From NCBI GenBank assembly GCA_002104905.1, contig MCFE01000386.1, positions 1-64,000 on the forward strand: 64,000 bases of DNA. Direction: 5' to 3'. The position numbers and the translations under genes were made by a program. Every line of letters starts with the position of its first letter. Within the stretch, counting starts at the first letter, position 1. This document shows positions 7,726 through 13,441 of this stretch, one piece after another. Under the pieces are notes generated by a model that made no database searches, was not told the DNA's origin, and saw only the letters and a program-made list of their open reading frames with translations. The DNA comes from Basidiobolus meristosporus CBS 931.73. Taxonomy: Eukaryota > Fungi > Basidiobolomycota.

Positions 7726-8176
7726 CGCATCGACCTCTTTTCCTAAATGGGTGGGAGGACTTATATTAAATTTCCAAACTGGCATCTAGTTCTGACTCTA
7801 CACTTGTGTGGAAGCTGTCGCATTCCTCTTGAGCGGTAACAACCGAAACCACTTACGTGGAACTTTTTGCACACAGAAGCCTTCCTTGAAACGGGCTTCC
7901 GTTCTACACAGCTGAAATATGGTATTCCTAGACCACAACATACGCTGGCTATAGGAATGTCAAGCTATTCCCTAAAAGAGCATCAATGGCTTGAGGAGGA
8001 AATCACCCGACTCTGAAAATTTTCAGTTGCCATCATCTTCTATATATGCACTTATCTTTGCGAGTCCTGGTGGGCTCGACATGGAGCATCCACATTCTTA
8101 GAAGAAAGAAACTGGCAACCGGAAGTTATAAAAATGCGAAGGACCAGCTCAGTTCATCAGACACATCCCAACTACA

Positions 8177-8980
8177 ATGCTTCTTGCCACCGCTTTGTTC
8201 GCTTTCTGCGCTTTGACAGCCACTGATGCGCTTACCTGCCCTGATGGTAACGGGCTCTACTGTGGCAATACACTAGGTACACTATGCTGCGTTTACTTTG
8301 TATAGGACATATTGGCTAACTGTCGAATTTCATATATAGGACTTGACTCCGATGTTTTGTATAACTGCGACTCGGACTCTTGGAGCTGGAGCTACAATGC
8401 AGTCCAACAATGTAGTAATGGGTGTGTCAATGCTGCACCTGGAAGCCCCGATTATTGCGCGGAACAAAATGCCAGCAATAACAACAATGACAACAATAGC
8501 AACAACAGCAACAGCAACAGCAACAACAATAATGATAACAACAGCAACAACAACAATAATAATACTAACACCAATAACAGCGGAAACGTCACATATACCA
8601 ACACTCTGAACGTTGCCAACTATCCTCTTGTGTTCCGTTTTGACAATGGCCAGTGTACCGATTGGGCTGATGCTCGCTACGCCCAGATTACTGGTCACCA
8701 TGTTACTTGGTGGGGTGATGCTCGTTTCTGGGCTGTCAGTGCTCGTGAAGCTGGCTGGGTCGTTTCTAAAACCCCCAAGGTCCCTTCGATCATTGTCATT
8801 CAACCAGGCTACCAGGGAGTTGGCTCTGATGGTCACGTTGCCGTTGTCGAGGAAATCATGGCAGATGGAAGCGTTTACACCAGTGATTACAACTACATCA
8901 TCAATGGCTATGGTGGGCCATACATCAAAACATACGTCACCTTCTATCCAGGCAACGGGGTCGACTTCATCTGGTATTAG
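8177..8980 (+). CDS. Secreted CHAP-domain peptidoglycan hydrolase with N-terminal 6-Cys module and poly-Asn linker (intron 8277-8339)
   Basis: Signal peptide MLLATALFAFCALTATDA; GT..GCTAAC..AG intron keeps the frame; CHAP motifs GQCTDWA (catalytic Cys), WGDARFW and GHVAVVE (catalytic His); AAC-rich linker. Confidence 0.88.
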
Positions 8981-9099: not shown

Positions 9100-9787
9100 C
9101 TACCATCGCGAGATGGAGATGATATCTCGCTCGTCAAAAAGGCTCTGTCCATCATCGTTCCAGTCGTAGTAGAATTCTTCGATCACAGGATAGCCTGGTA
9201 CATTCGCAACCAGTAAGCGAGGGCCGGTCACACGTCCGTTGGATTTACCCCCGGTGATCGCAATGTCCGCACAGTTCATGTAGTATTCACGCCGCCCTTG
9301 GGCATTGATCCAGGACCAGGCAAAGACAACCACCCCGTTCCCAATAGAGCGTGGAAGCCGTACGTTGAAATTGGATCCGGAATCTGTAAGACATGTATGA
9401 AGTACCTCTTTTATCACTACAAAATTGACGCCATCATAGCTTACAGCAAATTGGCAATGGCCTCCCTCATGGTTGTTCGGGCCTATCAGTCTCACCGGGA
9501 TCGATGAGCCTGGTCGAAAGATTGCCTGGATAGGCCCTCGCGGCTTCCCCTGGCATGGATAGCTCTAACAGAACCTGGTTAGCATTCTCGATGAAGACCG
9601 GGGAGTATTCGACCCTTACTCTGTCACCCTCCAGCGGGGAAGCCACATCCCAATCTGGACTGTGTTGACGGTAATACGGACTGAATATCGAGTCTCTGGG
9701 ATACGGGTAGGCCATTTCCATATGGCCAAATGCAGTGCTTGTACAGAGTGAAACAAAGAATAAGTTAGCAGCAAAAGAAGGTCGCAT
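9100..9787 (-). CDS. AA11-like lytic polysaccharide monooxygenase (chitin-active family), one intron 9619-9565
   Basis: Signal peptide followed by His1 (AFG|HMEMAYPYPR), SPL..YPC, second His in NHEGGHCQ, then FAWSWIN and GRREYYMNCADI. Histidine brace and axial Tyr are present. Confidence 0.85.
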
Positions 9788-10092
9788 GGTGTTAAGGGTG
9801 TTCAACGATAAGACCAACACTATTTATAATGCTGTTGATGAACTAATTGCAGAAGGCGGGAATTAAGTGAGTTGTCTCTTCTTCCGTTACATTAGATTAT
9901 TGCAGGTAGAAATCATCCTGCTATTCTCTGTATCAACCGTATGCATCAACCGTATGCATCAACCGTTTGCATCAAATGATCTAAATATCCGTTATGGCGA
10001 TTATCACTCGACAATTGTATCGGAAACGAGATTTATTCGGACACTATACATGACTGAGATGTGGGATTGAGATATGGGAATCCGATCGCTAT

Positions 10093-12405: not shown

Positions 12406-13441
12406 TTAGTTCTCTTCTTTGTCAATGTAGGAGCCAGGAGCATGGGGATCCTTCCTCAACTCCAACAAAAGCTCCTTCATTCTTGAGGTGTCTCTGGTGG
12501 ATTTCACATTACGGTTGCCAGAGTTCGCCACGTCGATCTCACGCCACACCAACTCCCAAGGGGAGCCGCCTTCAGAGACGTGTCCCTCAAGACCTCCGTT
12601 CTCTCTAAACGATTCGAAATAGAGTGATGAGTATTTCTTCGGAACGGAGTAGGGGCGGGTACCGAGGTTACCTATTACGCTCAAAGTTGCGCTCTTTCTT
12701 GGCATTGTAATCCTCATAGAAATCATCGATCGCCTTACGGGCCTCTTCCTTGGTTTCGAGATGTTTGGTTTCCGCCACCTCATCACGCTCCGCAATAACT
12801 GCGTTCTGCTTCTCACGCCATTCCCTAATACAAGGTGCGCTTGTTAATACTGATACTGGAGAGCTATGCTCAAGCCAAAGAGAAATGTCCACAATACTTG
12901 ATAAACTCGGAATCTGGCTCAGGCTGCTTGTAAGAGCTCTTGCTCAGGTTCGGAGATTTGTAGGTAGACTGAGGGGATTTCATGGAAGAGAAGCCTGGGC
13001 TGCTGGCTTGGGGGCTGGTGAAGAAATCCTAAGCATCGCAAGATAGTGAGTTTGGTCGAAGCGCGGAACATCGACCATTCGAGATATACTTACTGGGCCT
13101 GAGGTGTCTAGTGCTGGGTATTCACTTGAGAAGTTGGCAAAGTCATCCTGGCTCATTTGACTAGGCTGGGTTTGCGATTTGGGAAGCGGTACGTTCTCTG
13201 GCTCTGGGAAACTATCCAGAGCAGGGAACTTATCCATGCTGTAATTGCTCTGAGATTGAGATTGAGGAAGAGGTACATCTTCTGGCGCAGCGATGTTATC
13301 CAGAGGTGGGAACTTATCCATGCTACTGTCATCAAACTTCAAGTCATCACTACCTCCGGTCAGGAAACTGGCATCATCTCCCAAAAGTTCGCGTTCCCGG
13401 GCGAGGAAATCGGCTGTGGGGTCTTCGGTAAAATCAGCCAT
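12406..13441 (-). CDS. CLC1: Clathrin light chain (multi-exon)
   Basis: DPTADFLARERELLG at the N-terminus; IREWREKQNAVIAERDE coiled coil; PWELV..D.SRMKELLLELRKDPHAPG at the C-terminus. Confidence 0.9.

Follow-up and report, generated by a model that had tools for sequence, protein, structure and literature searches.

Time and again, eukaryotes with bacteria for neighbours have taken over bacterial enzymes that cut cell walls, for attack or for digestion, and to our knowledge few such borrowed wall hydrolases are known in fungi. The gene K493DRAFT_340078 of Basidiobolus meristosporus CBS 931.73 raises the question of how a bacterial-type CHAP domain (peptidase C51) came to reside in a fungal protein, and what that protein would do with it. 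The gene occupies positions 8177-8980 of the plus strand in the window, the 64,000-nucleotide stretch of contig MCFE01000386.1 analysed here, and comprises two exons that encode 246 amino acids. Basidiobolus is a herptile-gut symbiont and an occasional human pathogen, and the Entomophthorales, which also enter this account, are insect-killing fungi. An earlier interpretation made from the DNA letters alone (the sequence-only reading) took the product for a bacterial peptidoglycan hydrolase acquired by horizontal gene transfer (HGT) and domesticated as a secreted fungal protein.

The relationships of the CHAP domain point to an old transfer from a bacterium or phage to a fungus, with the fungal genes apparently nested in a Ktedonobacteria/phage-like radiation, and a single transfer that preceded the split between Basidiobolus and the Entomophthorales is the likely history. 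For the protein itself we favour, at a probability of roughly 0.7, a secreted modular lysin whose N-terminal module docks on a glycan wall polymer while the CHAP domain cuts peptidoglycan, so that bacteria are killed or digested. The sequence-only reading, which treated the gene singly, can be refined in that K493DRAFT_340078 belongs to a large family and is not a lone gene; a whole CHAP family is thereby placed in one fungal lineage, Basidiobolus plus fly- and cicada-killing fungi.

The CHAP domain and its host-side parts

Pfam family PF05257 recognises the catalytic domain at 57.1 bits, or at 59.5 bits when the domain is scored by itself, where the gathering cut-off is 26 (E = 2.6e-15). Among solved structures, sequence comparison places it nearest to the phage phi812 CHAP 'lytic cleaver', a Staphylococcus saprophyticus CHAP, an S. 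aureus amidase and PcsB. In the AlphaFold2 (AF2) model, predicted local distance difference test (pLDDT) values are 93-98 across the domain, and Foldseek returned a probability of 1.00 against more than 20 solved CHAP domains, including phi812, 5t1q, LysK CHAPk and LysGH15; the domain is predicted to adopt a papain-like alpha+beta fold. The GQCT and GHVAVVE motifs that the sequence-only reading had singled out for the catalytic Cys and His, along with its three longer motif strings, fit the sequence, and the two residues are Cys139 and His199. Across 46 fungal and bacterial sequences, Cys139, Asn218 and Ser215 are invariant, His199 is nearly so, and the Asp216 site holds either Asp or Asn. A helix begins at residue 139 in the model, and a beta strand covers residues 199-206. 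The His+17/His+19 spacing of Asp216 and Asn218 is the same as that of the Glu and Asn (E-S-N) in the S. saprophyticus CHAP sequence, which we take to be part of a Cys-His-Glu-Asn relay. As judged from these alignments, the Cys139/His199/Asp216/Asn218 catalytic relay is intact.

Staphylococcal and phage CHAP domains (the phi812 hub, 9eum/9euf; S. aureus, 5t1q; S. saprophyticus, 2k3a; CHAPk of LysK, 4csh) belong to the same Pfam family, have the papain-like fold and share the Cys/His pair together with acidic/amide residues at His+17 and His+19. They differ in that they are 30-37% identical to the CHAP domain of the window and carry SH3b, amidase or virion domains, whereas the Basidiobolus protein is eukaryotic and has a signal-like peptide, an intron, a poly-Asn linker and another accessory module.

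The protein begins with a segment that, judged by eye, resembles a signal peptide, with a putative cleavage site after T-D-A that leaves the small residues T16 and A18 at positions -3 and -1. Most Basidiobolus paralogs start with a similar signal-peptide-like N-terminus, and the product of K493DRAFT_340078 is probably secreted. The linker that precedes the CHAP domain is disordered in the AF2 model (pLDDT <50 over residues 90-117), has comparable N/S/G-rich counterparts in the paralogs and is probably flexible and glycosylated. All four elements described in the sequence-only reading, namely the signal peptide (again by eye), the intron, the poly-Asn linker and the intron-free CHAP domain, lie where it had placed them, and the match of the described elements to the sequence is far beyond chance.

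Between the signal segment and the linker lies a Cys-rich module with six cysteines, which the intron interrupts inside the Gly34 codon. Within the Basidiobolus CHAP family the module is borne by five proteins only, P0001 (the database record of K493DRAFT_340078) to P0005. All six Cys are kept in the four full-length module proteins (4/4), and P0005 as annotated shows the last three only. The extra module and the intron set K493DRAFT_340078 apart from most family members. Modelled alone with AF2, the module forms a small beta structure (pLDDT 84.6; predicted template modelling score, pTM, 0.69). Its best match in the ESM Atlas is the accessory domain of a Myxococcota M23 metallopeptidase (template modelling score, TM, 0.76; root-mean-square deviation, rmsd, 1.6 over 58 residues), followed by a second Myxococcota M23 cluster (TM 0.58) and an Amidase_2 protein (TM 0.52); two clusters of ~90-residue Ascomycota proteins, also ESM Atlas models, match the fold as well. 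That the predicted fold recurs on the bacteriolytic enzymes of predatory bacteria is a lead, and it fits a wall-targeting role.

Full-length comparisons were made with P0001, and each exon was searched separately. The two exon translations, joined through the split Gly34 codon, reproduce P0001 (246 aa), with which exon 2 is 100% identical. The intron (8277-8339) has GT..AG ends and a CTAAC branch site ~19 nucleotides (nt) ahead of the 3' AG; its GC content is 0.35 against 0.47-0.53 in the exons, and an unspliced reading of exon 1 meets a stop at 8303-8305. In the B. ranarum ortholog, P0002, a 62-nt intron sits at the same codon; the flanking exon sequence is conserved while the intron interior has diverged, a cross-species comparison that backs the predicted splice junction 8276/8340. 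An intron at this codon is common to P0002 and the paralog pair P0004/P0005, and is absent in P0003, whose gene is intronless, is exactly 238 codons long and aligns across the junction without a gap. Since P0003 clusters with P0004/P0005 (SH-aLRT, the Shimodaira-Hasegawa-like approximate likelihood ratio test, 98), its intron was most likely lost.

The CHAP domain is under strong purifying selection. Between P0001 and P0002 the CHAP domains are 93% identical, with 14 non-synonymous against 62 synonymous differences, a non-synonymous rate (dN) of 0.048 and a ratio to the synonymous rate (dN/dS) of ~0.018; against the paralog P0003 the ratio is 0.074, and in both comparisons dS is saturated and the ratio is rough. 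The Cys-rich module has a dN of 0.21, ~4x faster than the CHAP domain, yet every Cys is kept. Composition is uninformative as an HGT signal: the GC content of the CHAP domain (0.50) is host-like (host coding sequence ~0.49-0.50), and that of the Ktedonobacteria homologs has a mean of 0.55. Domestication, which the sequence-only reading had proposed, is borne out by the eukaryotic flanks, an intron conserved between species, the signal-like N-terminus and purifying selection on the CHAP domain.

Relatives of the CHAP domain

Relatives were sought by an exhaustive HMMER profile search of 1.84 billion representatives, which gave 1473 matches, of which the best 150 were inspected. The broad, vertically inherited eukaryotic clade that the sequence-only reading had set against its own proposal was not seen among these 150 of 1473, where the named eukaryotes were Basidiobolus, Massospora cicadina and Entomophthora muscae, the last with five paralogs. 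Two environmental sequences among the same 150 cluster with these fungi. One of them lies on the 29.9-kb L083 (JGI 3300042649), which is gene-poor, eukaryote-like and of 27% GC, and which carries an Entomophthorales-type CHAP, a CHCH-domain gene and a Tc3-like transposase; the probable source of L083 is a fungus, or some other eukaryote, that has yet to be sequenced and in which the CHAP family is present.

A prokaryote scan of 185,579 bacterial and archaeal species, with one genome per species, found 76 loci, all of them in Ktedonobacteria (Chloroflexota) and of 44-62% identity. The genera were Thermogemmatispora, Dictyobacter, Ktedonobacter, Ktedonosporobacter and Tengunoibacter, together with many metagenome-assembled genomes (MAGs). 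The scan used peptide patterns from this subfamily and is therefore biased towards close relatives; its result is matched by the exhaustive search, in which one protein cluster is named Thermogemmatispora. The closest named relatives of the catalytic domain, such as Thermogemmatispora tikiterensis WP_112429574 and proteins of Ktedonobacteraceae MAGs, share the same motifs. They are membrane-anchored proteins of 300-350 residues in which a long N-terminal region, with a transmembrane segment, precedes a C-terminal CHAP; they lack both the Cys-rich module and the poly-Asn linker, and their role is presumably the remodelling of the bacterium's own wall. The motif style had reminded the sequence-only reading of CHAP domains from soil Chloroflexi and Actinobacteria: the Chloroflexi half of that resemblance held, in the form of Ktedonobacteria, and nothing pointed to Actinobacteria.

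The maximum-likelihood (ML) tree, computed under LG+G4, rests on an alignment of 152 rows by 112 columns and is rooted on two Staphylococcus-type CHAPs, with support given as ultrafast bootstrap (UFboot)/SH-aLRT. Basidiobolus is monophyletic (100/94) and joins a group of Entomophthora, Massospora and the two environmental sequences (98/90). This fungal-type clade is sister to four metagenomic sequences, P0073, P0077, P0130 and P0133 (99/91), and together with these sisters it stands beside the main Ktedonobacteria clade (99/87); further metagenomic sequences diverge below these groups. A quick tree of 266 rows also places all fungal sequences together (SH-aLRT 95). The CHAP phylogeny, which had been proposed as a check, thus supports HGT: the fungal clade is nested among Ktedonobacteria relatives in a rooted tree, and the bacterial origin suggested by the sequence-only reading stands. 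The CHAP family's occurrence in the Entomophthorales as well implies that the transfer was old and was followed by vertical descent in one subphylum. Whether one or two transfers took place, the clade is vertically inherited within one fungal subphylum and is not a broad eukaryotic family.

The sister group has a phage-like aspect. The CHAP domain is N-terminal in P0073, P0077 and P0133, and all four sisters, P0130 included, have a C-terminal transmembrane helix. The contigs of P0073, P0130 and P0077 are 8-12 kb long with short co-directional genes. On the P0073 contigs an SLT transglycosylase comes after the CHAP gene, and genes nearby weakly match a HerA/TrwB-type ATPase and a minor head protein; on the P0130 contig the CHAP gene adjoins a LysM protein, and on the P0077 contig no diagnostic gene was seen on reading. 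P0124, on a more basal branch, lies on a 17-kb contig (L090) with genes for a protein-primed family-B DNA polymerase (PolB) and for a small packaging ATPase of the FtsK/HerA type. Taken together, these contigs resemble tectivirus-type phages or related elements, which suggests a phage vector. Among GenBank phages and plasmids, only distant Firmicutes-type CHAPs were found, two of which served as the outgroups of the tree.

Proposed function and competing explanations

The favoured account can be set out as a series of steps. Its gene model, the identity and fold of the CHAP domain, the intact catalytic residues, the place in the tree and the purifying selection come from the analyses above; that the protein is secreted, what it cleaves, what its module binds and what part it plays ecologically are inferred. 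A CHAP gene of Ktedonobacteria/phage-like type would have entered the ancestor of Basidiobolus, and most likely of the Entomophthorales too, and would then have multiplied in Basidiobolus by tandem duplication. In the sub-lineage of K493DRAFT_340078, the CHAP domain would have acquired the Cys-rich module and the intron, giving a predicted layout of an endoplasmic reticulum (ER) signal peptide, a six-Cys disulfide-rich beta module, a linker and, at the C-terminus, a CHAP cysteine amidase/endopeptidase. Once outside the hypha, the enzyme may be anchored on a glycan wall polymer by its N-terminal module, the poly-Asn linker may provide reach, and the Cys139-His199-Asp216-Asn218 relay would cleave the peptide stems or cross-bridges of peptidoglycan, or the MurNAc-L-Ala amide bond. 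The outcome would be the lysis of competing bacteria, or the digestion of their walls as food, in soil, dung and herptile guts.

Several observations weigh against parts of this account, and rival explanations build on some of them. As to origin, two separate transfers, into Basidiobolus and into the Entomophthorales, from related Ktedonobacteria-type or phage donors would yield the same enzyme function. A tree that holds Entomophthora and Massospora outside a clade of Basidiobolus plus bacteria is left standing by the approximately unbiased (AU) test (p = 0.31), the alignment is short at 112 columns, and the CHAP domain of the window is nearer in identity to Ktedonobacteria (mean 55%, max 64%) than to the Entomophthorales (mean 46%). 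The held-apart tree is nevertheless worse by 21.7 log-likelihood units, both trees described above unite the fungal sequences, and long branches explain the lower Entomophthorales identity, so that two transfers seem possible but doubtful and one old transfer is preferred. The donor raises a further point. IMG/VR scans, made with the family alignment and with P0073, gave no relative, and it is a rather improbable proposal that the CHAP family came into an early entomophthoromycotine fungus from a small, membrane-containing, tectivirus-like phage of Ktedonobacteria and not from a bacterial chromosome, that the fungus, in the lineage of this gene, then added a disulfide-rich wall-binding module with the fold that predatory myxobacteria join to their lytic M23 and amidase enzymes, and that the lysin, assembled by a eukaryote, is in this sense convergent with those of bacterial predators. 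In view of the bacterial-type domain and the mostly intronless paralogs, we considered whether the gene is an artefact, either contaminating bacterial sequence in the assembly or a pseudogene in decay; both were rejected, and we give them a negligible probability, given eukaryotic intron-bearing neighbours on the 83-kb contig, a spliceosomal intron conserved in a second species, host-like composition and a dN/dS of ~0.02.

As to function, CHAP domains include amidases that do not act on peptidoglycan, such as glutathionylspermidine (Gsp) amidase, and membership of the family is no proof of substrate. The enzyme could act on some other amide or peptide (the fungus's own wall glycoproteins, thiol-amide metabolites, or host or prey proteins), with the module anchoring it to fungal chitin. 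The Gsp amidase of E. coli is a distant fold match, at E ~0.07 only, while the close matches in sequence and fold are all peptidoglycan hydrolases of phages and Gram-positive bacteria, and the bacterial relatives adjoin an SLT transglycosylase or a LysM protein. The module is harder to place, having no Pfam match (E up to 1), no protein-atlas feature match and no sequence relative outside the five Basidiobolus proteins (a word-based search returned P0001 and P0002 only). It matches solved chains weakly (Z <=3.7), and the comparisons of its fold depend on models predicted for a ~55-residue domain. Six of the top 12 solved-chain matches (Z 2.2-3.6) are CBM14/peritrophin-type chitin binders (Blo t 12, Der p 23, the CBM14 domain of chitotriosidase, two Avr4 proteins and tachycitin), a chitin-type module could just as well fasten the enzyme to the wall of the fungus itself, and the hydrophobic tail of the paralog P0013 suggests surface anchoring. 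The module's best fold matches, however, are on bacteriolytic M23 and Amidase_2 enzymes, and we regard another substrate as unlikely. It is less likely still that the enzyme serves host interaction by trimming peptidoglycan fragments and so altering the immune sensing of bacteria in the herptile or insect gut. Animal immunity can be modulated by peptidoglycan-degrading enzymes, and the CHAP family is common to gut-dwelling Basidiobolus and the insect-pathogenic Entomophthora and Massospora; there is no direct evidence for such a role, the same enzymatic activity would still be required, and the very many copies in saprobic Basidiobolus are more in keeping with nutrition or competition. A bacteriolytic enzyme remains our preferred reading.

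If the enzymes are active, they would help to explain how Basidiobolus shapes gut bacterial communities, would offer a dated case in which expansion came after an old transfer, and would provide eukaryote-adapted lysins, naturally secreted and glycosylated, as enzybiotic starting points. K493DRAFT_340078 also illustrates how a transferred domain gains host-side parts, here an intron, a linker and a putative binding module.

Laterally acquired wall hydrolases have precedents in other eukaryotes, including the GH25 lysozymes (PMC4241558), the NlpC/P60 enzymes of Trichomonas vaginalis, whose activity is proven (PMC6299479), and tick Dae2, likewise of proven activity (10.1101/2020.04.10.036376); Saprolegnia parasitica has a secreted CHAP family (PMC3681718). 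The present case is like these in that a eukaryote living among bacteria captures a bacterial or phage peptidoglycan hydrolase that gains a secretion signal, in Basidiobolus a putative one, and often multiplies. It differs from them in its Entomophthoromycotina recipient, its Ktedonobacteria-like donor, the addition of a non-bacterial-looking Cys-rich module and an activity that in Basidiobolus is predicted; the enzyme family, too, differs from all these precedents except the Saprolegnia CHAP. According to Tabima et al. (2020), strain CBS 931.73 has 806 candidate bacterial genes, mostly intronless, of host-like composition and flanked by fungal genes (PMC7466969), and K493DRAFT_340078 resembles the candidates as characterised there in its host-like composition and fungal flanks. 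The main text of that paper makes no mention of CHAP, peptidoglycan or Chloroflexi (PMC7466969), and in the searchable literature we found no account of this family and no paper in which Basidiobolus, Entomophthora, Zoopagomycota or Conidiobolus is linked to a CHAP domain or to Peptidase C51.

The wider CHAP family and features of the locus

At least 39 distinct CHAP proteins, counted as 90%-identity clusters, are present in two Basidiobolus species: 20 in B. meristosporus and 17 in B. ranarum, with 2 more from B. ranarum contributed by the exhaustive search. The usual layout is a signal peptide, an N/S/G-rich linker and a CHAP domain, and most of the genes are intronless. Copies are often in tandem: P0003 and P0005 are neighbours, and on MCFE01000226.1 (L086:1-10534) six intronless CHAP genes stand head to tail in ~10.5 kb. 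Three of the six genes in this array are intronless and of 177 codons, and the array represents a short form that consists of signal peptide and CHAP.

Individual members show further variation. P0005 (K493DRAFT_304014, 182 aa; L085:3238-4004, MCFE01000319.1) looks N-terminally truncated as annotated: upstream, an open reading frame (ORF) codes for a signal peptide plus the first part of the Cys-rich module, and next to it comes a GT..CTAAC..AG intron, placed at the Gly codon where K493DRAFT_340078 has its own. In P0068 (K493DRAFT_367689), Phe replaces the catalytic Cys (GQFT) and the annotated end falls inside the CHAP domain; it is a dead or decaying copy, or a pseudo-enzyme. P0013 (B. ranarum K7432_013800) has a Ser/Thr-rich C-terminal extension that ends in a hydrophobic tail, which suggests a glycosylphosphatidylinositol (GPI)- or membrane-anchored surface form.

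Features of K493DRAFT_340078 in the window, with the metagenomic contigs used for comparison
Feature	Position	Strand	Remarks
TATA-like box (TATAAAAA)	8127..8134	+	43-50 nt 5' of ATG; putative promoter role, from sequence reading
Exon 1	8177..8276	+	ATG at 8177; residues 1-33 and base 1 of the Gly34 codon; equals the P0001 N-terminus
Signal-peptide-like segment, residues 1-18	8177..8230	+	hydrophobic core at residues 2-14; judged by eye
Cys-rich module, part 1, residues 19-33	8231..8276	+	Cys21, Cys29; alignment A3
Spliceosomal intron	8277..8339	+	63 nt, phase 1, within the Gly34 codon
Exon 2	8340..8980	+	TAG stop at 8978-8980
Cys-rich module, part 2, residues 34-73	8340..8458	+	Cys43, Cys58, Cys62, Cys73; alignment A3
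Poly-Asn/Ser/Thr/Asp low-complexity linker, residues 74-118	8459..8593	+	several N-x-S/T sequons
CHAP (peptidase C51) catalytic domain, residues 119-246	8594..8977	+	intron-free; Pfam PF05257
Catalytic Cys139 (GQCT)	8654..8656	+	invariant in A1 and A2; pairs with the Staphylococcus CHAP nucleophile Cys
Catalytic His199 (GHVAVVE)	8834..8836	+	nearly invariant in alignments A1 and A2
Asp216-Tyr-Asn218 relay residues	8885..8893	+	at His+17 and His+19
AATAAA	9018..9023	+	38 nt past the stop; possible polyadenylation signal, from sequence reading
Metagenomic contigs with the nearest non-fungal CHAPs outside the Ktedonobacteria chromosomal clade	L079-L082, L090, L091		8-17 kb; short co-directional genes

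On the 83-kb contig, the region 3' of the CHAP gene carries two minus-strand genes, one resembling lytic polysaccharide monooxygenases (LPMOs) and an intron-split gene for clathrin light chain. The former (9100-9820) is a convergent two-ORF gene immediately downstream of the CHAP gene. Its C-terminal part gives weak matches to the AA9 and AA14 LPMO families (E ~2e-3, under the cut-offs), its N-terminal ORF has a signal-like hydrophobic stretch followed by His-Met, and it may be a divergent secreted LPMO. The clathrin light chain gene lies at 12406-13441, where an intron divides the coding region into at least two ORFs.

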